The position numbers and the translations under genes are program-made. A model generated the notes under the pieces. The model searched no databases. It saw only the letters and a program-made list of their open reading frames with translations, and was not told where the DNA came from. Positions 35,691 through 48,400 of a stretch of 64,000 bases of DNA are shown one piece after another. This DNA is from Macrostomum hystrix (Eukaryota; Animalia; Platyhelminthes), in assembly GCA_950097015.1 (NCBI GenBank), contig CATNEN010000039.1, positions 10,540,001-10,604,000 of the forward strand, read 5' to 3'. The first letter of the stretch is position 1. The number at the start of each line of letters is the position of its first letter.

Positions 35691-36515
35691 GTTCTCACTG
35701 CTTCGATTGTGCAGAATGGAAGCACACGAGCCAGAGGAAGCAGCCAAGTGGCAATGCGATGTTCCTCTCCTGAGCAATGATTCGTGCAGCTCATGCACTG
35801 ATTTTGTGCCCCTGCATGTCGCGGCACGGCCTTAGGAAAACTTTTTCCTTGTTTAATAGGCGCTGAGTCTGCTGGAGCTTCGGCAAACATTGGCGACCTT
35901 GTTGTCTCTGGACCTTGCTGTCTTTTCTTTCTGCTCAATAATTGCTTTAAATGGCGATGGGGCGGAGACTGAGCGGCAAGCATGAGTTGGTTCCCGCTCT
36001 GCAAAGCACAGGAGCAGTGATTGATTAGGAAGACAAAATGCGAGCCCAAAGTTCGATGAGAAGTGACTCTTCACTGTGTGTCTGCATCTTTTTTAGTTCA
36101 ACTTTCAGTCCAAGCCTATATAAGTTTTCTTTTGCCTTAATTTTGTTGCTTGCTGACCAATTTTTCTTCGTGACCCAGGCAGAAAATGCTCGGACCTGAC
36201 CCATCCATCGATGAGACCTGCCAACGCATCGAGTTCATCGCCAGGGAAGACATCGCCTACTCAAATTTAGTGGCAAGAAAATGCAAAAGGATAATTGTTT
36301 TCGTTAAAAATTAGGAGAGGTGGAGATTCCATTGGCCGGAACTACTGGTAGGTCAGCTGATCGATCAGCTATTGGATGACAGCGGTGTAATAAAAAATAT
36401 GTATCCCAGCTCCCTATCTCTTATACTCACCCTTTCCTCACCCTCACCCATTCCCCCCACTCTAATTCTCACCCCTTCCCTCAATCCTATTCTCCCCCCT
36501 GTCTTCCCTCACCCC

Positions 36516-36930
36516 CTTCTCTTCTATTCTCTCCCCTTCTCTTCTATTCTCTCCCCTTCTCTTCTATTCTCTCCCCTTCTCTTCTATTCTCTCCGCTTCT
36601 CTTCTATTCTCTTTTATTCTCTCCCCTTCTCTTCTATTCTTCCCCTTCTCTTCTATTCTCTTCCCTTCTCTTCTATTCTCCCCCTTCTCTTTTATTCTCT
36701 CCCCTTCTCTTCTATTCTCCCCCTTCTCTTTTATTCTCTCCCCTTCTCTTCTATTCTCCCCCTTCTCTTCTATTCTCTTCCCTTCTCTTCTATTCTCCCC
36801 CTTCTCTTCTATTCTCTTTTATTCTCTCCCCTTCTCTTCTATTCTCTTCCCTTCTCTTCTATTCTCTTCTATTCTCTCCGCTTCTCTTCTATTCTCCCCC
36901 TTCTCTTCTATTCTCTTCCCTTCTCTTCTA
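36516..36930. repeat. Pyrimidine microsatellite (TTCTCTTCTA/TTCTCTCCCC), left part, split by the transposon
   Basis: Continues in register at 44973-45183. Confidence 0.93.
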
Positions 36931-37272
36931 CCCGCTTGGCTTTTTAGTCCGGATTTTGTCCGCCATTCGTCCGCTTTTGGGGTCCTTTCCGGACCAAATC
37001 GGGATTTCATCCGCATTTCATCCGGATTTCACGTCCGGACCAAAATGTGGGAGAAATTCCGGGCCAAATCCGGACAAAGGGGTTTCGCAAACCACTTTTG
37101 ATCCGGATCTCATCCGCAATTTGATCCGAACTTTTGAGCGGACGAAAAGTCGGACTGCAGTCCGGATGAAAGTAGGGCGAAAATGTATTTTGTCCGGAAA
37201 TTTCATCCGCTTTGTCTCCCGCCTGTTCAACCGCAATTGAGCCGGACAAAGTTCCGGACGAAGATCGGACAA
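36931..37272. repeat. Left TIR plus subterminal TCCG(G/C)/CGGA repeat field
   Basis: Dense TCCGG/TCCGC/CGGAC motifs in both orientations. Confidence 0.8.
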
Positions 37273-37698
37273 ATATTAAGATTGCTGTCTTACTTAATGT
37301 AGTCATCAGCTGTACCCACTGTACTGTCTGTACTGACAGACTGCTTATTCGAATAGTATTCGTATGCAAATCCTGGATACGCTAATAAATGATGTCATTC
37401 TTGTGCAGCGCGCACCGATTCAATTTGGCACTTTGACAGCTCGCCAGCCTTCTTTATTTGCATGATAATGAAGAGTTCTAGGTTGGCATAATTCATAGGC
37501 ATATTGTCAAGGGACTTAAACTGTACAGTGATGTACACGAAGCTTCTTTTCCATTTTGCCGTCACGTTTTGTAGGGTAATAGCTTCGCCTCCAAAAAGAG
37601 TAATAATTACGGTGCCACTGTTAACATGAGACAAAGGTAAAGCTTTCTTTAAAAAATTCGGTCATTCCAGCGCACCACGTTTCTGCTGTCAGCTGCAT

Positions 37699-40629
37699 AT
37701 GGAGGACGCACAGCATCGCAGGCGCCTCTGGATGAGGGCGTACATGCAGAAGCGAAGGGCGGCTCGCACACGCTCTCGGTCACCTATGTCTGCCTCTGGC
37801 TCATTGCCCGCCCATCCGGACTACACCCCACCCAGCGCCGATGACGGCTCAGACGGCAGTGCAGATGACGGCAGCGCCCATGACGGCTCAGACGGCAGCG
37901 CCGATGATGGCTCAGACGGCAGCGCCGATGATGGCTCAGACGGCAGTGCAGATGACGGCAGCGCCGATGACGGCTCAGACGGCAGCGCCGATGACGGCTC
38001 AGACGGCAGCGCCGATGCTGGCTCAGACGGCAGCGCCGATGACGGCTCAGACGGCAGCGCCGATGACGGCTCAGACGGCAGTGCAGATGACGACAGCGCA
38101 GATGACGGCAGCGCCGATGCTGGCTCAGACGGCAGCGCCGATGACGGCTCAGACGGCAGCGCCGATGACGGCTCAGACGGCAGCGCCGATGACGGCTCAG
38201 ACGGCAGCGCCGATGACGGCTCAGACGGCAGCGCCGATGACGGCTCAGACGGCAGCGCCGATGACGGCTCAGACGGCAGCGCCGATGACGGCTCAGACGG
38301 CGGCACCGATGACGGCAGCGCCGATGACAGCAGCGCCGAGGACGCCGGTGAAAATAACATCCCCGTGCCCCATGACATGCTGGAAAATGCCTGGCACGAT
38401 GCCCTGCCTTTGACAATCGGCGAAGCGCTGTGCGAGGTGAATTCCTGTGCATTAGACCTAAATGTGTCACGGGACGGATTTACCAGACTGTTGGCAATGC
38501 TGCATCGCCTAGTGCCCGGCAATAGGCTGCCTAGATCAGGACGAGCCGCTCGCGATGCAACTAAGTCGATGCAGACCATGTCGGGCACGACAAAGTGCTT
38601 CACAGTGTGCAATGAATGCAACAGGAGTTCGCCTGGGGTGTGCCGAGCAGGTCTCACAACTTACGTGCACTGCGGTGCGACCAACGTGGCGAACTTCTGG
38701 TGTTTTGATGTGCCCAGACAGCTGAAGACGCTCATAGAGTGCCGTAGCATGTTGGACCACGTCGTTTTCCCGGCCGACAGAGTAGTGCCACCCGACGTAG
38801 TTCACTTTGCCACTAGTGAGCTGTACATTCAGTTCATGGATGGCATCGATGTTCCGAGCCGCTGCGACCTGTCCTACACTTTCTGCTCAGACGGCTTTCC
38901 ACTGTTTAGGACAAGTTCGGTTGAAGTTTGTCCCGTCTACCTTAGTGTCAATGAGGTACATGATCGTTTTAAGCTGCGCTACGTAGTAATTTGCGGCGTT
39001 TGGGCCGGAAAGAAGAAGATCCATGCGAGTGCATTCCTCCCATTGGTCGTGGTCACCCTTAATGACCTACGCTTTACCGGGCTAGAGTTTGTTGACCAAC
39101 AAGGCGTTCAGCGCCGTCTAAGGTTTCATCCGCTAATCGCGATGTTTGACGCTCCAGCCAGAGCTGACGCGCTGTGCATGAAGCGCTTCTCCGCAAAATA
39201 TGGATGCGATAAATGTTATCTGCTGACGTCCCTACACCCCTCGAAGCACGGTCGAGTGTTCGGCGTACAACTAACTCCTGCCATGCAGGGAACCGCCCGT
39301 CGCCTTGGCTGCACCCAAACGCTGGTTCGGTCTATGAATGACACATTTACTCTAGCTGAGCGCCACTCGCAGCAGAACCTAAACTCACGCACCGACGTGC
39401 TAGGCGTCCGTGGACACTCGCCGCTCGGGCGACTGTGCGGGTTCGACTTTATCAGGGGGACACCACCGTGCTTTCTACACCAATTGTGCTCGGGATTGGT
39501 TCGCTACATCCTGTTTCAAATGTTTCTCGTGCGACATGAGAAGCCTGACCGGGGTGATACCAACTGCCCTGATCTGCACGGTCGGATTGCCGTAGTGCAG
39601 AGTCGCCTGGAGAACATTCGCCTGCCCAGCTGCGTGCAGCGCCACACGGTGCGTGAGCTAAGAGACCTCCGTCACCTTCGTGGCCACGAGCTAGAAGTCT
39701 GGATCCTAGCTTTCGGCCCGATGGTGCTGGGGGAATTTCTGCCACCGGAACACTACTGGCACCTGTTGCTCCTATCCTCCGCTGTATTCTGGATGACCTT
39801 GGAGGGTGCCCCAAGAAGCGAGTTGCGGCATGTCGAAATAACTCTCCGGCATTTCCATGCCGCCCTGCCGCGCCTATACTCTCTGAGGGCCCTCACGTAC
39901 AACAGCCACCAGGTGTGCTGTCACATGCTGCCATCCGTTCTGCTAGCCGGGCCACTGCACAGACAGTCAGCAGGACTCTTTGAAACCATGCACTCCCGTT
40001 TGCGTCGTCGGATTCACGGTTCCAGGCGCACTGATATCGAATTGGTTGGCGCAGTGGAGAGGGAAGTCGCGGTGATCCAGGCTGATGATTTTGTCAACGA
40101 CGGTGTCCGCCACCCTGAGCCACGCGGTAAACGCAGGACAGAGTCACTCGTGATTGAAGGAGTGCTGTTGCGACGTCCGCAGGGTGCAACGGACGGCTGG
40201 CGCACTGTGTCACTGCCCACCGGGGTGACCATCGTGGTATTCGAGTCCGCGCCCACGGAGGGCGCCGCCGGTAGAGGAAGGTCCACCTCCAGCTTTGTGG
40301 CACTTCGAGGACCAGAAACCACGTCCTTCAATTTCGCACGTGTTGAGGCACTCAGCGTCAACCAAGAAAACCGCGTCATGGTCTCTCTCGTAGCGCTACC
40401 CATTGAACCTCAGCTTGACCCACTGGAGGCACTTTGCGCGGTCTCTGCAGCGTCACCTGACCGTGGGTGCCGCTTCGCTCATGTGCGGCGCCTTATGGTT
40501 GACCCGTTCGTTGACAGGCTCATTCTCGGTGCCGCTGTACGCGTGCCTCTGGCCGACGTTGTCGGTGTATGCGTCGTTTCAGACACGTATATCGCCCTAA
40601 TGCCGCATGCCCAAATGGGTTTTTCTTAG
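37699..40629 (+). CDS. CMC/EnSpm-type DDE transposase (Transposase_21/Tnp2-like), 976 aa
   Basis: Motifs CNEC..HC zinc finger, SDGFPLF..CPVYLSVNE, FDAPARA, GCDKC (C2C), LH..CSGL, NSHQVCCH and GPL..SAGLFE follow the CMC D-D-C(2)C-LH-H..H-E order. Lies between the TIRs. Confidence 0.88.
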   Translation: MEDAQHRRRLWMRAYMQKRRAARTRSRSPMSASGSLPAHPDYTPPSADDGSDGSADDGSAHDGSDGSADDGSDGSADDGSDGSADDGSADDGSDGSADDGSDGSADAGSDGSADDGSDGSADDGSDGSADDDSADDGSADAGSDGSADDGSDGSADDGSDGSADDGSDGSADDGSDGSADDGSDGSADDGSDGSADDGSDGGTDDGSADDSSAEDAGENNIPVPHDMLENAWHDALPLTIGEALCEVNSCALDLNVSRDGFTRLLAMLHRLVPGNRLPRSGRAARDATKSMQTMSGTTKCFTVCNECNRSSPGVCRAGLTTYVHCGATNVANFWCFDVPRQLKTLIECRSMLDHVVFPADRVVPPDVVHFATSELYIQFMDGIDVPSRCDLSYTFCSDGFPLFRTSSVEVCPVYLSVNEVHDRFKLRYVVICGVWAGKKKIHASAFLPLVVVTLNDLRFTGLEFVDQQGVQRRLRFHPLIAMFDAPARADALCMKRFSAKYGCDKCYLLTSLHPSKHGRVFGVQLTPAMQGTARRLGCTQTLVRSMNDTFTLAERHSQQNLNSRTDVLGVRGHSPLGRLCGFDFIRGTPPCFLHQLCSGLVRYILFQMFLVRHEKPDRGDTNCPDLHGRIAVVQSRLENIRLPSCVQRHTVRELRDLRHLRGHELEVWILAFGPMVLGEFLPPEHYWHLLLLSSAVFWMTLEGAPRSELRHVEITLRHFHAALPRLYSLRALTYNSHQVCCHMLPSVLLAGPLHRQSAGLFETMHSRLRRRIHGSRRTDIELVGAVEREVAVIQADDFVNDGVRHPEPRGKRRTESLVIEGVLLRRPQGATDGWRTVSLPTGVTIVVFESAPTEGAAGRGRSTSSFVALRGPETTSFNFARVEALSVNQENRVMVSLVALPIEPQLDPLEALCAVSAASPDRGCRFAHVRRLMVDPFVDRLILGAAVRVPLADVVGVCVVSDTYIALMPHAQMGFS
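37834..38340 (+). repeat. 24-bp coding repeat (ADDGSDGS)n in the transposase N-terminus
   Basis: GCCGATGACGGCTCAGACGGCAGC ~20 times, with in-frame 15-bp variants. Confidence 0.95.
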
Positions 40630-41097
40630 CAGTTTAGTGAAGCCGGTTCTGTCCAACGACAAAAATGTAAACTTTAGGAAAAAGTATACCATAAAAGAAA
40701 ATACTATAAGTTATTGTATAATCTATACACATATTGAAATATTTTAGATTCGCCTCTGGGCTCTCGATGTCCAGCTTAATGAATATTCTTATTATCTTCA
40801 CCTGTGTTGGGTTAAATTGTAACACTTCAATATGCTATACCATTTTCAAACGAATATCGTATACGTTTACATTCATAAGACACGTAATGTAAATAGAGAC
40901 TTGAACGAACAATGTAACGTAATCTACTGGACACTAAATAAATCCGTCATGCTTTTGACTTGCGTAGAAGTCCGCGCTGCTGGCCTGTCTTCTCATTTCT
41001 GGTCACGGTTCCTCACTACCCACTACATAATTACAAATATGGCATAGGGAAACATGGAGACCTAAGCGCTGCATAAATCTTGCCATATTTCAGCCGA

Positions 41098-41853
41098 ATG
41101 GATGCCTCCGGACCTATTCAGTGGTCGCGTATTTTGGACGACGTCCTACTGGACAGCAACTTCTTGGACTTCTTGGACGACGATGATACCGAGACGACCC
41201 TCGGGGAGAGCGACCGCCGATCACCGGGTGAAGGAGCCTGGCCCGTCGAGAGCCAGAACTTCCTGGACCCGGACGACTCGCTCGCGTTATGTCCGCCTGC
41301 TGCCAGCAGTACACAGGCACCTGCTTTACCAACTAGCCCTCGTGTACCGTTGGAGAGCGACCGCCTATCACCGGGAGAAGGAGCCTGGCCCGTCGAGAGC
41401 CAGAACTTCCTGGACCCGGACGACTCGCTCGCGTTATGTCCGCCTGCTGCCAGCAGTACACAGGCACCTGCTTTACCAACTAGCCCTCGTGTACCCGTTA
41501 AGTACACGTGGGCGGACTATAACCGGTTGCCCGACGAGCCGCCGCCCAATTTCGACTCTCGCCGACCCGAGGAGCGCCGCCGAATCCCCGCTCAGACGTG
41601 CGCGGATTGCGAGAGTTGGTTCGCGGCGTTGCCACCGGCAGAGCGTGAGCGACGACTGCAGTGCCACGGGCGCCATCGACATCGCCCAGTTATCCAGTCG
41701 GCCGACTTCTTCGCTATTGCCATGCCGCCGAGCCCACCACCCGCACCGATAGAGCACATGAAGGTGATGAAGCGCCGTCGGCGCCCCCTAAGAGACCTGC
41801 AGTCTGCAGGGCAGTCGGTAAAGAAGCAGTCGGTTGATGAGAAAGACGACTGA
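41098..41853 (+). CDS. Transposon ORF2: 251-aa protein with a CtIP/Sae2 C-terminal (SAE2-like) motif
   Basis: ATG 41098 after TTTCAG. RRPEERRRIPAQTCADCESWFAALPPAERERRLQCHGRHRHR (41560-41685) matches the CtIP/Ctp1 R..EER....TC..C..YY......RHR signature. Internal 49-aa duplication. Confidence 0.78.
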   Translation: MDASGPIQWSRILDDVLLDSNFLDFLDDDDTETTLGESDRRSPGEGAWPVESQNFLDPDDSLALCPPAASSTQAPALPTSPRVPLESDRLSPGEGAWPVESQNFLDPDDSLALCPPAASSTQAPALPTSPRVPVKYTWADYNRLPDEPPPNFDSRRPEERRRIPAQTCADCESWFAALPPAERERRLQCHGRHRHRPVIQSADFFAIAMPPSPPPAPIEHMKVMKRRRRPLRDLQSAGQSVKKQSVDEKDD

Positions 41854-42181
41854 AAGCCGATGTAGCCGAGTCAAAAGCATGACGGATTTATTTAGTGTCC
41901 AGTAGATTACGTTACATTGTTCGTTCAAGTCTCTATTTACATTACGTGTCATATGAAGCTTGGGAAGTAAAAATTGAAGTTCGGCTCACAACTGGCAAGA
42001 CTGGAACACAGAGACTTCATTTCTGTTATTTTCGCATTCACTCATGTTACTCCATAGACTCTATTAGACTTGATGGTTACATTAGGTTAACCTTCGGTGG
42101 TTAGTTAACAAGGTTACCTCCGGTTACCATGAAAATTATTATATACATCAACCGTCATCATCATCAGTTGCAGCTACTACA

Positions 42182-44062
42182 ATGACCAAGCCTACGACGT
42201 CCAATCGAGCAGCATCGAAGCAAAAGGGCGGGCTTCAGCGAGGAAAAGTAGGGAAGGCCAAGAAGCAAAAGGAGAACACTCCGCCCGAACCAACGGGCGT
42301 GCCTGCTTCAAGCGACACGCCTCCTCCCACCGCGCCACGTGACGCAGCTGACGCGCTGGAAGAATCGGTCACAGACCAGAATGGCCAGACCAGCAGCACA
42401 GAGGACATGGTGCCTTATAAGTCGGAGAGCGTGGCGCGTTACTTTCTGTTCAAATACAGCTGTTACCATGACCGCACGGAAGTAGTGTCTACCGACGGTG
42501 AGAGCAGTGCTCCCGTCATTGTCGCGCGCAGTCGGGACTCACCGATCCCTGTTGCCGTAGGGAGCCGTGTGCTAATAGTCACAGCTAAAAAAAACCGCGC
42601 CTCGGCGAAACGCTGGTCCGGAGACCTGCTTCGCGGCCCGTTTTCTAAGAAAAGTGAGGCCACGGGTGCCGCCCTGCTAACCAACGTGCACGCCCCGCCG
42701 CTAGAGCTGCCTCGTGCCTGCGCCTCCTGTCGGGGGTTACTTGTGGAACTCCAGAGAGAGAAAAGTCTCACCGACACACTGCGTGAGTAGATGCTAGTAG
42801 ATGCTAGCTTTTCCTGCTGAAAAATGGTGCATCATATTACAATAGTGTAATGATGAGACTTATTGCGTGTACCCTTTTGCTACAGATTGTGAGTTAATTA
42901 TGTCTCTTTGTGACATCCAACAGGTTCTGAAGTTCGACTGCTTCGTACAAGCGAAAACCAGTTGCGCGAGCAGGTTCGACATCTGACGCACGGGAGCTCT
43001 GTTCAGTCTAAGGTTGAGAGTCGACTTCTCCTGCAGCTAGAGCAGGAGCAGGGCAGGAGCCTAAATATGCAGCGCAATGCGGAGAAGGCGAACGAGTGCC
43101 TCGTCCGCGCCTCGCATTACCTGCTGGCTTTTAATTCGGCATCGACATCTGCCAGCGCTCTGGCCGGACTCGTGCATCCGGCGGCGCCACCGGGGGCGGC
43201 GGCGGCTGCTGTGGCTGCAACGGTGTCTAGCGGCGATCCGGACGCGGAATCCGATCCGGGGGATGAGTCGGAGAGTTACCGCATTACGGACTTCTTAGCG
43301 GATAGTCACCTGTCTGTGTCGCAGACACGCGCTTTGAGCGACGCATGCGACAAGGCTGCATCTCAAGCAGGACCTTCTACGGAAGCTGTCGCTCGGGTAT
43401 CGCTTTCCGACCAGCAGCCCTTTTTGAAGATTTCCGCCCAGCGCCGCTCCGAGCTGGATCATCGCAACAATGAGCTGCGCAAATTGATGGCGCCCCCAGA
43501 AGATACCGACATCGAAGAGGCCACACTAGCATCCCGTCGCAGGGCCGCAAGACTGTCTACACTGCGCGCTCTTTTTAGGGCCATTTTTACGGACGCGGAA
43601 TTGGCGCACTCCAGCATTTCGGGTCGCCAAGCCTCTGGCTACGCCACGTCTGCTGTAAATCCTGCCAAACTGCAGGCGGCAAAACTGTGGCTGCAGAACG
43701 CTGACATCTCTTTTAGCACGGACGATCTGCGCCGCGCCTTCACTCGCTGCGGCGAGGCGGTTCGCCGACGCATGGGCCTGCCAAAGCGCATTCGGCCAAA
43801 GAAGAACCCAACAGATCGCCAGCGTCAAAAGAAGGCGGCTCGAGTCTCGCAGCAGACTGTAGTGCGCATCATCGGAGTCGGCTCGAATGCATCCAACCCT
43901 TCCGACGTCGCCGCGCACGCCGCTGCCATTCCTGCCGTTCCAACGACCAGCAGACCGGTTTCCCAGGGCGCTGAAAATTGTGCTGCTGCTGCAACTAGTG
44001 CTGCTGCAACTAACACCAGTCACCGACGTGCAGGAAATGGAGTCGGGAGATCTCGAAGATGA
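42182..44062 (+). CDS. Transposon ORF3: coiled-coil + BEN-domain protein, ~579 aa, 2 exons
   Basis: Exons 42182-42782 and 42924-44062 join via C|GTGAGT...CAACAG|GT (phase 1) into TDTLRSEVRLLRTSENQLREQV (coiled coil). BEN-like LRALFRAIFTDAELAHSSISG...VNPAKLQAAKLWL...LRRAFTRCGEAVRRR. Confidence 0.78.
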
Positions 44063-44182
44063 TTTGCTGCTGCGTGTTTTGCAGCAGAGAGACTGATTTA
44101 ATGATTTACATGAATTCATGTCCCTCGATCGCATTCTTTTCACTGGACCGCCTACGTATACTAGTGTATACGGAGATTGCGG

Positions 44183-44385
44183 CACCAGAGTAGAGTACAC
44201 CAGATCCGGGTATAATTAGAAGTTGTTTAGTGGACCACGTGTACAGTGCAGATATTGCACAACCAGAGTAGAGTACACCAGATCCGAGTATAATTAGAAG
44301 TTGTTGAGTGCACCACGTGTACAGTGCAGATATTGCACAACCAGAGTAGAGTACACCAGATCCGGGTATAATTAGAAGTTGTTGA
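44183..44385. repeat. 78-bp direct repeat (~2.6 units) inside the transposon, 3' of ORF3
   Basis: CCAGAGTAGAGTACACCAGATCC at 44185, 44263 and 44341. Confidence 0.9.
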
Positions 44386-44644
44386 TCGTGCACCAACTGG
44401 TGTAAGTGTCATTGCTGTAAGTGTGCATTAAAAGTATATACTTTTAGGCGTATATAGACGTAAGAATTAATAACATCTTTTATGAAAAGTGTTCCTAGCA
44501 CGTACTGGACATAATCATTTATTGTCAGTCTTGTCAGACTTAAATTCTTTCGCTGCAGCACTTGTTAGTTTATGCTAAACGATTGATGCATCTGCATACG
44601 CTTGGGTTGTTCGAATAAGTGGGCGCTGGAACTCACAGCATGCA

Positions 44645-44972
44645 GTGGTCCAGATTTCGGTCCGCTTTGTGGTCGCAGGGTGCGTGCGTCTCATTCGTCC
44701 GGATTTCGGTCCGCTTAGTGGTCCAGAATTGTGTGCGTCTCATTCGTCCGCATGTTGGTCCGGTCTCTAGTCCGCAAGAATGCGGATCAACATCCGGAGA
44801 AGAAAACGGACGAATTGCAAAAAGCAAAGCGGATCAAGGGGTCAAAATCTGCACTTTTCGTCCGCTTTGTAAACTTTTCATCCGCTTTTCAGATAGGAAA
44901 AAATACATTGCGAGGCGGACGAAAATCCGGATATGAAATCGGGCAAAACGGCGGACTAAAAAGCCAAGCGGG
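44645..44972. repeat. Right subterminal TCCG/CGGA repeat field plus TIR
   Basis: Same motifs as the left field; ends in CGGACTAAAAAGCCAAGCGGG. Confidence 0.8.
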
Positions 44973-45183
44973 TATTCTCTCCCCTTCTCTTCTATTCTCT
45001 TCCCTTCTCTTCTATTCTCTTCCCTTCTCTTCTATTCTCTCCGCTTCTCTTCTATTCTCTTGCCTTCTCTTCTATTCTCTCCGCTTCTCTTTTATTCTCT
45101 CCCCTTCTCTTCTATTCTCTTCTATTCTCTTCCCTTCTCTTCTATTCTCTCCCCTTCTCTTCTATTCTTTCCCCTTGTCTTCT
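44973..45183. repeat. Pyrimidine microsatellite, right part
   Basis: Same units as 36516-36930. Confidence 0.93.
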
Positions 45184-45429
45184 ATACGTAAGAGTTTTTT
45201 GTTTTCTACTCGCAGCTAAAATAAATAGGAATGCAATGATTCAACGGTGTCAGTAGTTAAGGTTGATCGTTACAGCTACAGAATGCAGAAAAAGTAAAGT
45301 TTAAACACACAGCGGCAAAGTTTATTCGTGATAAGAAAATTATGACAGAAATGCGATTCGCACCATGATTATACAAAAACGAAAGCGAATAGATTTTGCC
45401 AGATAGTCAGATATACTACTGAATCAAGG

Positions 45430-48400
45430 TTAGTTAGTAGTATAGAAAAGTGCGCGAAATTGTTCGGCCTCTTTGGCCATCTCCTCGGCGTTCCGATCCG
45501 GCCGGGCGGGCGACGCCGATGACTCCAGGGCGGTGTAGACGGCGTCGTTGGGCTGGAAATCGCCGGCCTGACGGGGCAGGACGTGGATGTGCAGATGCGG
45601 CACAGTCTGGCCAGCTAGGCGGCCGTCCTGGATGCTGAAGCTGCACGAGTCAGTGCGGGCTAGCTCCCTGAGCCTGGAGCTCACGAGCTCAGCCAGATTA
45701 ATTAGGTCGGCCCGTTCAACCGGCGAGAGATCGCTCAGCCGGCTAACAGACGTGGCGCGGCGCGGACAGACAAGGACGTGGTGAGGCCGGATGGGGCGCA
45801 GATTAACGGCCGCGTAGGACAGGCGGGTGAGGCAGAACACCTGGCTAGCTGGTAGGTGATGCGGGCCGAACGCGAAATCCGCTGACTCGGGTATGGGAAC
45901 TGGACATAGGGGGAAATGTAAGTCTTTGTAGGCTGTGTTGTATGCTACTTAAAACTGCTGGTTTATAAGTTGCATAATATTTACTGTCTTAGACAAGCAG
46001 TAACCTGTTAGACAGGCTGTAACCTGTTAGACAGGCTGTAACCTGTTAGACAGGCTGTAACCTGTTAGACAGGCTGTAACCTGTTAGACAGACTGTAACC
46101 TGTTAGACAGACTGTAACCTGTTAGACAGACTGTAACCTGTTAGACAGTCATGTTGGCCTACTCACGCAGTGCCAGCTCCCCAGATATGCTGGGATAAAG
46201 GTCGTATCGACGCTGCTCCATCACTGGCATGCCGGATCGCACCTGTTCCAGGTAGGTGAGATTGATACGGCACAGGGCCAGGCCGTCAGATTTGCCATCC
46301 AATTCGGCGCAAACCTTGCCCCATGGATCGATAATGCAGGCGTGGCCGTAGGAGTGACGCCGGGCATTGTGCGAGCCGGCCTGAGCGGCAGCCACCAGCC
46401 AGCACTGAGACTCGATGGCGCGTGCGCGCAGCAGAGAGATCCAATGGGCCAGGCCTGACAATGTTTGTTTCATAGATTGGCTAATCAGTTTAACCTGTGT
46501 GCACTGCATAGAAAATAACTGACATTATTTTTTCTTCTGTTGGATCGTATTGCTTTAGGGACACATTTCTCTCACCTGTAAATCCCATCTCTCTTACATG
46601 CAAATCCCATTACTCTCACCTCTGAACCTCATCTCTCTCACCTGTGAATCCCATCTCTCTCACCTGTGAATCCCATCTCTCTCACCTGTGAATCCCATCT
46701 CTCTCACCTGTGAACCCATCTCTCTCACCTGTGAACCCATCTCTCTCACCTGTGAACCCATCTCTCTCACCTGTGAATCCCATCTCTCTCACCTGTGAAT
46801 CCCATCTCTCTCACCTGTGAATCCCATCTCTCTCACTGTACCTGAGGACCCATCTCTCTCACTGTACCTGAGGACCCGTCTCTCTGACCATAGTCCTGCA
46901 TAATCACACAGAAAAGCAAGACACTCTCAATGCAACAGGACCCACCTGTCGGTACGGTGAAGGCGCTCGGATACGTAAGAATCTGGGCGCCACGTTCTCT
47001 AAGGCCAATCGCCACCTCGGCGAAGCGCATGTCGTAGCAGACGGCCAGGCCGACCCGGCCGGCTGGTGTGCCAACCACCGGTCCAAGGCTGGCGCCGGGT
47101 TTGGTGAAGCGCGACTCCATGAAGCTGCGGCCGCTGACCCCGGCGGCTGCGTCGTCTGGCACCCGGACGTCGAACATGTGAGCTTTGTCGTAGCGGCCGG
47201 CAATGCCACCAGCCGGATCAATTAGTAGGTGGCTGTTGCTAATGCGCTCGGGCAGCTGCGGATAGTAGGCAATGTTTGGGAGAGATGATAGTCAAGGAAG
47301 GAAAGTAGAGAAGCAGTTAAGTAGATTAGGTAGCTAAAGTAGTCAGGTAGAGTGGCTAGTCAAAGTAGTCAGGTAGTGGGTAGTCAAAGTAGTCAGGTAG
47401 AGTGGGTAGTCAAAGTAGTCAGGCAGAGTGGGTAGTCAAAGTAGTCAGGTAGAGTGGGTAGTCAAAGCAGTCAGGCAGAGTGGGTAGTCAAAGTAGTCAG
47501 GTAGAGTGGGTAGTCAAAGTAGTCAGGTAGAGTGGGTAGTCAAAGTAGTCAGGCAGAGTGGGTAGTCAAAGTAGTCAGGCAGAGTGGGTAGTCAAAATAG
47601 TCAGGTAGAGTGGGTAGTCAAAATAGTCAGGTAGAGTGGGTAGTCAAAATAGTCAGGTAGAGTGGGTAGTCAAAGTAGTCAGGTAGAGTGGGTAGTCAAG
47701 GTAGACAGGTAGAGTGGGCAGTCAAAATAGTCAGGTAGAGTGGGTAGTCAAAATAGTCAGGTAGAGTGGGTAGTCAAAATAGTCAGGTAGAGTGGGTAGT
47801 CAAAGTAGTCAGGTAGAGTGGGTAGTCAAAGTAGTCAGGCAGAGTGGGTAGTCAAAATAGTCAGGTAGAGTGGCTAGTCAAAGTAGTCAGGTAGTGGGTA
47901 GTCAAAGTAGTCAGGTAGAGTGGGTAGTCAAAGTAGTCAGGCAGAGTGGGTAGTCAAAGTAGTCAGGTAGAGTGGGTAGTCAAAGCAGTCAGGCAGAGTG
48001 GGTAGTCAAAGTAGTCAGGTAGAGTGGGTAGTCAAAGTAGTCAGGTAGAGTGGGTAGTCAAAGTAGTCAGGCAGAGTGGGTAGTCAAAGTAGTCAGGCAG
48101 AGTGGGTAGTCAAAATAGTCAGGTAGAGTGGGTAGTCAAAATAGTCAGGTAGAGTGGGTAGTCAAAATAGTCAGGTAGAGTGGGTAGTCAAAGTAGTCAG
48201 GTAGAGTGGGTAGTCAAGGTAGACAGGTAGAGTGGGCAGTCAAAATAGTCAGGTAGAGTGGGTAGTCAAAATAGTCAGGTAGAGTGGGTAGTCAAAATAG
48301 TCAGGTAGAGTGGGTAGTCAAAGTAGTCAGGTAGAGTGGGTAGTCAAAGTAGTCAGGCAGAGTGGGTAGTCAAAATAGTCAGGTAGAGTGGGTAGTCAAA

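Follow-up and report, generated by a model that had tools for sequence, protein, structure and literature searches.

For a cut-and-paste transposon to gain copies, the break that it leaves has to be repaired from an element-bearing copy, and the choice of repair pathway thus sets the success of the transposon. The CACTA element En/Spm encodes TnpD together with TnpA, a DNA-binding protein unrelated to CtIP, and has CACTA termini and a 3-bp target-site duplication (TSD). Helitrons encode RPA-like proteins and are thus eukaryotic DNA transposons in which a conserved accessory open reading frame (ORF) codes for a DNA-metabolism protein of host origin. Fungal DNA transposons (KDZ/CMC-type and others) are reported to encode TET/JBP dioxygenases (PMC12730594). 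Here we describe an 8,042-bp element of the cut-and-paste type from the flatworm Macrostomum hystrix, located at 36931–44972 of a 64,000-nt stretch of contig CATNEN010000039.1 (positions 10,540,001 to 10,604,000 of the forward strand; hereafter the window). The element has perfect 21-bp terminal inverted repeats (TIRs) and a TA duplication, and it encodes on the + strand, in this order, a transposase, ORF2, ORF3 and ORF4. ORF2, the gene in question, ends in the C-terminal domain of the DNA-repair proteins CtIP and Sae2.

The C-terminal domain of CtIP/Sae2 binds Rad50 and with Mre11 forms the active state of the nuclease, and its S267/T847 phosphate is paired with R77/R79 of Rad50 (10.1101/2023.08.05.552090). 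For S. pombe the same study describes a hydrophobic pair, and a 15-residue C-terminal peptide of Ctp1 that activates Mre11 without cyclin-dependent kinase (CDK). Natural CtIP/Sae2 homologues range from <200 to >900 aa (10.1101/2023.08.05.552090). When hAT transposons excise in yeast, Pso2 opens most of the flanking hairpins, and strains without Mre11 or Sae2 yielded no revertants (PMC3299998).

ORF2 occupies 41098–41853 on the + strand (251 aa; ATG at 41098, TGA at 41851–41853), exactly as the original prediction had placed it, and the peptide quoted there starts at residue 155 (nt 41560). The CtIP/Sae2 domain (41518–41790, +) makes up the ≈90 C-terminal residues of ORF2 and ends 20 residues before the stop. 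It contains YNRLP, the CxxC motif (C168, C171), RHR (192–194), FF, MPPSP and a KRRRRPL end. Both C168-x-x-C171 and R192-H193-R194 are invariant in an alignment of ten copies, as are the aromatic pair and the basic KRRRRPL end. A likeness to human CtIP had been given as 19 of 42 ungapped identities with CxxC and RHR kept, and this was borne out by BLASTP against a mammalian CtIP C-terminal fragment (P0011), which gave 20 of 44 identities, ungapped, at E 4e-12.

Neither the whole ORF2 nor its 118-aa C-terminal part has a Pfam match. The Pfam family SAE2 (PF08573; gathering score 19.8 bits) does match six of the ten aligned family members, with a best E of 1.1e-5, so that the proposed SAE2 check came out positive for the family and below threshold for the window copy alone. 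Scanning the 220-Mb genome with PF08573 gave four matches above the cut-off, all four of them members of the ORF2 family, with scores of 25.7 bits, or 27.7–28.7 bits when neighbouring stretches were included. A profile built from ten different genome copies of the ORF2 domain (A1) was compared with 1.84 billion representative proteins and retrieved 378 at E ≤ 1e-3, of which 44 reach E ≤ 1e-10; in these proteins of ≈500–1500 aa the matching region is C-terminal. All ten of the A1 matches that were scanned pass SAE2, and five also carry CtIP_N (P0006, P0009, P0010, P0014 and P0015), among them P0006, which is named DNA endonuclease RBBP8. RBBP8/CtIP proteins with both CtIP_N and SAE2 were retrieved by A1 at E 1e-15 to 1e-12. 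An hhalign comparison of A1 with P0011 gave a probability of 97.8% (E 7.6e-13, 71 columns), and the ESM Atlas clusters nearest to ORF2 are SAE2. Against PDB sequences A1 gave only a chance match, 2ke4 (E 0.42), with no CtIP tail sequence found there, and two metagenome scans (profiles A1 and A3) returned no matches. We accept the domain identity because the family profile passes where the window copy alone falls short: judged by these comparisons, the C-terminus of ORF2 is a genuine CtIP/Sae2 "C-rich-H" domain.

The host has a CtIP gene of its own. It lies on the contig of the window element (C39:3,400,457–3,402,415, −), is the best match to CtIP-like proteins from outside, and has three exons, of which the first encodes the coiled coil and the last the domain. 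It is 73–82% identical to Macrostomum lignano Mlig004387 and has no transposase nearby. ORF2, in contrast to this single, separate gene with introns, is intronless, multi-copy and enclosed by TIRs. The possibility that the window locus is the host's only CtIP, which had been named as a way for the prediction to fail, is excluded by the three-exon gene at C39:3.40 Mb.

The similarity between ORF2 and the host gene is not confined to the Pfam domain; on the upstream side it continues as far as an acidic DDEGSET motif, at which the last host exon begins. The simplest reading of these alignments is that ORF2 represents the last exon of host CtIP, captured from genomic DNA and joined to a new acidic leader. 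The window ORF2 has no coiled coil or tetramerisation domain and its leader is unrelated to host exon 1, which confirms for the window lineage the predicted lack of a CtIP N-terminal coiled coil. A leader motif, (W/F)SxI(L/M)DD(V/L)L, is common to several ORF2 lineages. Two other lineages (L039:2433–3287, −, and L020:1039–1923, +) have no acidic leader and start with MDHWTHAA-CxxC followed by a heptad-like EEN..LRAE..RLR segment, which could be an alternative oligomerisation module. Capture of a full CtIP cDNA was considered and rejected, as the L039 N-terminus shows no significant likeness to host exon 1 (E 0.84).

The position equivalent to T847/S267 follows directly after RHR. In the ungapped register the window reads RHRHRPVIQSADFF and host CtIP RHRDNQRPPLQAPNFF, the host having Q there, so that host CtIP (QAPNFF) and ORF2 (QSADFF) are alike non-phosphorylatable at the strict T847 position. 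At the position of human T859 all copies have either (S/T)-P or T-Q, with a conserved (S/T)-P within MPP(S/T)P, and many transposon lineages carry an Asp three residues ahead of the FF/FW pair. The lack of the CDK site in ORF2 had been pointed out. The absence is real, but since host CtIP is also without the T-P it is not specific to the transposon; it is inherited from the host and represents no transposon adaptation.

The genome contains at least 38 stretches matching ORF2, which correspond to ≈30 loci with 41–99% identity. The transposase family has at least 69 genome matches, and ORF4 has 29, mostly beside transposase or ORF2 loci. When coordinates were compared by hand, at least 21 of the ≈30 non-host ORF2 loci had a same-strand transposase match 0.2–6.5 kb upstream of them; this is a lower bound, since only 60 of 214 transposase candidates were scored. 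The predicted co-occurrence of SAE2-like ORFs with transposases, apart from host CtIP, is thus found, and the linkage holds in lineages whose transposases are 37–61% identical to that of the window. One ORF2 type is present as four identical copies (C26:1365230, C38:24314384, C3:7696219 and C38:33672435), three of them without a listed transposase nearby; they may be a non-autonomous derivative that retains ORF2.

The sub-family of the window element has three near-identical copies, the other two being at C12:1.112 Mb and C9:0.116 Mb. Both of these have a broken transposase, and in the C12 copy the RHR of ORF2 has changed to RNR, leaving the window copy as the only one with all frames open. 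Between ORF2 lineages the proportion of nonsynonymous differences (pN) is 0.18–0.5, against a saturated proportion of synonymous differences (pS) of 0.63–0.95; for L012 and L017, for example, the values are 0.178 and 0.709. The neutral decay of other copies that would have spoken against the prediction is therefore not seen. For the same pairs of elements, pN of the ORF2 domain (0.29–0.42) tracks that of the transposase (0.27–0.47). By these sequence comparisons ORF2 is inherited with the transposase under purifying selection, and the similar constraint and joint divergence of the two genes argue against a passively carried fragment.

Contigs matching the element at 95–99% are present in three wastewater metatranscriptome runs from one study. 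They cover the transposase to ≈40650, ORF2 from 41367 to 41829, ORF3 and ORF4. The spacer at 40667–41060 is covered by no RNA contig and by one DNA-like run, which suggests that the transposase and ORF2 are on separate transcripts. Because metatranscriptomes hold the element at such identity, the animal or a close relative appears to live in the wastewater habitat.

The account that we favour, with due reserve, is that ORF2 is a functional accessory gene whose product acts on its own to co-activate host MRE11-RAD50 where the element makes breaks. ORF2 retains the whole tail that faces MRE11-RAD50, with CxxC, RHR, the FF/FW loop, (S/T)-P and KRRRRPL, and would dock on the host complex in the manner of a CtIP tail. 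At excision breaks it would then stimulate the MRE11 endonuclease independently of the cell cycle; ends bound by transposase or capped by hairpins would be cleared and resection begun. Subsequent repair from the sister chromatid would restore the donor copy and give a net gain of copies. Framed more broadly, it is possible that a transposon-encoded CtIP tail, freed from the cell cycle, engages MRE11-RAD50 at the transposon's own breaks and steers the choice of repair, whether by activating or by blocking. A predicted complex of transposase (742 aa) and ORF2 (202 aa) scored 0.00, which is neutral on binding.

Several points weigh against activation. The role of ORF2 is a prediction from sequence alone, and the 66-aa core of the window ORF2 matches SAE2 at E 0.32 and 12.5 bits, under the 19.8-bit cut-off. 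The RNA contigs are of low depth, come from one study and may represent DNA carry-over. Hairpin ends at CMC excision are hypothetical. Several transposase lineages of 39–44% identity with long open frames have no detectable ORF2 nearby (C38:20235034, C39:12601577, C37:1586885 and C2:2932289), so ORF2 is not indispensable; these lineages either lost ORF2 or predate its capture. Canonical docking is also uncertain, because the T847/S267 match is non-phosphorylatable while host RAD50 (C5:1,511,053–1,531,066) keeps the partner arginine (IRAKV). This last objection is softened by the same gap in host CtIP.

CtIP, Sae2 and Ctp1 require their N-terminal tetramerisation domain in vivo. Since ORF2 of the window lineage is without such a domain, a monomeric tail could equally block the MRE11-RAD50-NBS1 complex (MRN), and this is a further point against activation. 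In that case, which we consider unlikely, ORF2 would be a decoy or dominant-negative protein that occupies or sequesters the CtIP site on MRE11-RAD50 without activating it. Resection and MRN attack on intermediates would be suppressed, and end-joining of the donor or survival of the excised element favoured. The missing coiled coil fits a decoy as well as it fits activation, as do purifying selection and linkage, and a non-phosphorylatable residue opposite a retained phosphate-pairing arginine might be expected of one. However, the T-P site is missing in host CtIP also, so its loss is no mark of inactivation, and C-terminal fragments or peptides of Sae2/Ctp1 are reported as sufficient for activation of MRE11-RAD50 in vitro. 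Lineages L039 and L020, with their N-terminal CxxC and heptad-like segment, might moreover be able to oligomerise.

DNA binding is in part a function of the RHR region itself, and the dense subterminal repeat arrays of the element need a binding protein. It is conceivable, though distinctly unlikely, that the RHR tail has an architectural role and binds or bridges the element ends at these repeats, as TnpA would, without involving MRN. The RHR motif and DNA binding and bridging by Ctp1/CtIP are treated in PMC4551917 and PMC6344080. DNA bridging by CtIP requires a tetramer, however; ORF3 and ORF4 are candidates for the end-binding protein too, and conservation across the transposon lineages goes beyond RHR to span the whole tail facing MRE11-RAD50.

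The history of the domain could be more complex than a single capture. A maximum-likelihood tree places the transposon copies and the host genes of both flatworms in one clade (100/99), apart from the CtIPs of other animals, and within it the host pair is not basal but nested among the transposon lineages as sister to the window clade (84/92). Congruence with the transposases is also incomplete: L012 and L017 have closely related ORF2s beside strongly differing transposases. Both observations would fit a reversed or mixed transfer, in which a transposon copy replaced the last host exon or overwrote it by gene conversion, or in which that exon was captured several times. We regard this as very unlikely, as the tree is built on only ≈130 columns, is rooted at its midpoint and leaves several forks open, and the host genes of the two species are orthologous, with introns and the coiled-coil exon. 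One capture, several, or later exchange may all fit a tree of this size, and a reversed transfer would alter the history and not the finding.

Scarcely tenable is the view that ORF2 is a passive, transduplicated host fragment of the Pack type with no function for the element: DNA transposons including CACTA often capture host gene fragments (PMC6379663), the homology begins exactly at a host exon boundary and the C12 sister copy has already lost RHR, but open frames persist in many lineages past synonymous saturation, the place beside the transposase is kept in at least 21 loci, and ORF2 is found in autonomous-looking elements with full-length transposase ORFs and not in Pack-type derivatives, so that pN far below pS and the co-divergence with the transposase largely refute it.

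The boundaries of the element are well defined. The left TIR, CCCGCTTGGCTTTTTAGTCCG (36931–36951, +), is 100% complementary to the right TIR (44952–44972) and identical to the TIR of the C12 copy, and the alignment of sister copies with the window element begins only at 36931. The dinucleotide TA borders both ends (36929–36930 and 44973–44974). The host site is a 20-bp satellite (CCCCTTCTCTTCTATTCTCT) whose array is found on both flanks (36513–36930 and 44973–45185). If the element is taken out together with one TA, the empty site that results has an intact satellite unit, ...cttctcttcTAttctctcc... Two-bp TSDs were seen in all five elements having both ends (ta, gg, tt, aa and at). Subterminal arrays of (G/A)TCCG(G/C) motifs in both orientations take up ≈330 bp at each end (left array 36931–37273), and the right array (44640–44972) runs up to and includes the right TIR. 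The window has 18 occurrences of the heptamer GTCCGGA where 4.15 would be expected, and eight of the 18 lie within 36931–37273. A further internal tandem repeat of 78 bp × 2.7 is located at 44184–44395.

The transposase ORF (37699–40629, +) is intact and encodes 976 aa. A 24/48-bp tandem repeat at 37852–38316 (+) codes for (DGSDGSAD)n in its N-terminus and differs in length among the three sister copies. Direct Pfam searches matched neither the window transposase nor six relatives, and the window protein is 38% identical to a M. lignano protein. It is related to P0003, which passes PF02992 and PF06869; the database search gave E 7e-14, and a pairwise alignment of 541 aa gave E 4e-22. The alignment with P0003 pairs DGF-PLF with DGM-QVF and FDAPARA with CDAPARA, DGF and DAPAR being motifs of the catalytic region. 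Matches to PF02992 (tnp2) elsewhere in the genome were considered as members of this family and rejected, as they are located in other elements. The TIRs of four sub-families start with CCCGC(T/C) or CCCGTG, not with CACTA/CACNG. Remote transposase homology via P0003, the 2-bp TSD and the subterminal repeats support, at the level of sequence, a divergent CMC-type (tnp2-related) element. The CMC assignment of the original prediction is supported in this remote sense, but not as regards CACTA termini, the ends being CCCGC.

ORF3 (42182–42790, +; 202 aa) keeps its position in related elements, and a Pfam scan recognised no domain in it. ORF4 (42962–44062, +; 366 aa) has a coiled-coil N-terminus and a C-terminus conserved in the family. 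The original prediction rightly placed ORF2 inside the TIRs after the transposase, but its naming of the downstream ORF4 as a BEN gene is unconfirmed, as the window protein has no Pfam match and the counterpart of one lineage alone gave a sub-threshold one (E 0.01, 16.5 bits). Distant lineages have additional genes between transposase and ORF2, one of them zinc-finger-like and another encoding a coiled coil and weakly matching BEN (L036:5094–6254 and L039:5001–6341), which makes the gene order variable across the family.

Two rearrangements are private to the window copy. An in-frame tandem duplication of 147 bp × 2.0 (41205–41495, +; 98% matches with the TRF program) adds 49 aa to ORF2. The C12 and C9 copies lack it and have an ORF2 of 202 aa, as against 251 aa in the window, and an RNA-library contig skips 147 nt at this place. 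The second is an 89-nt inverted duplication, of which the left arm (40872–40960) is 99% complementary to the right arm (41869–41957), the latter following directly after the ORF2 stop. The right arm is missing from the C12 and C9 copies and from public RNA and DNA contigs, which have ≈30–38 other nt at this site (38 in the RNA-library contigs). A nested element or invertible segment was ruled out for this reason. The inverted duplication brackets ORF2 and has the look of a template switch or repair scar, in an element with a repair-factor gene. Both duplications are recent changes of the window copy and lie outside the design of the family.

Adjoining the element, at 45433–47177 (−), are exons of a nitrilase (carbon-nitrogen hydrolase) followed on the same strand by a HIT-domain exon. 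This host gene has the NitFhit-type arrangement of invertebrates.

Literature searches on CtIP or Sae2 in connection with transposons or CACTA/CMC elements, and on Macrostomum transposons, found no report of such a cargo, in agreement with what had been supposed. Repair-pathway choice has so far been viewed as the host's; if the proposed role is true, a transposon would bring its own repair switch. The element would then give direct genetic access to the ways in which mobile DNA manipulates the repair of breaks, and ORF2 would be a natural minimal CtIP module for dissecting MRN activation. M. lignano is a laboratory animal with transgenesis and RNA interference. The idea is testable, because the window copy has four open frames and the related M. 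lignano is tractable.

Compared with known systems, the element shares with En/Spm a transposase that is, on remote homology, tnp2-related, further element proteins and subterminal arrays, but differs from it in its CCCGC termini and 2-bp TSD. The RPA-like proteins of Helitrons belong to rolling-circle chemistry and are a single-strand-binding cargo, whereas ORF2 is a cargo of the putative nuclease co-factor type. The fungal TET/JBP transposons, which belong to diverse lineages, have a host-like enzyme gene beside the transposase, as here, but their cargo concerns methylation and silencing and their hosts belong to another kingdom. The 15-residue Ctp1 peptide and the Sae2 fragments resemble ORF2 in being tails without oligomerisation domain or CDK site and are a precedent for solo action; however, they are laboratory truncations or depend on a natural hydrophobic switch with Rad50 L77, while the host RAD50 that ORF2 would meet keeps an arginine. 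The closest likeness is to cellular CtIP/RBBP8, Sae2, Ctp1 and COM-1, with which ORF2 shares CxxC, RHR, the FF/FW loop, the KRRxxP end and the C-terminal placing of the domain, and above all to the host's own CtIP (≈50–61% identity in the domain). Unlike cellular CtIP, ORF2 is borne by a transposon in ≈30 copies, has an acidic leader in place of CtIP_N, and is 202–251 aa long against at least 481 aa for the host type.

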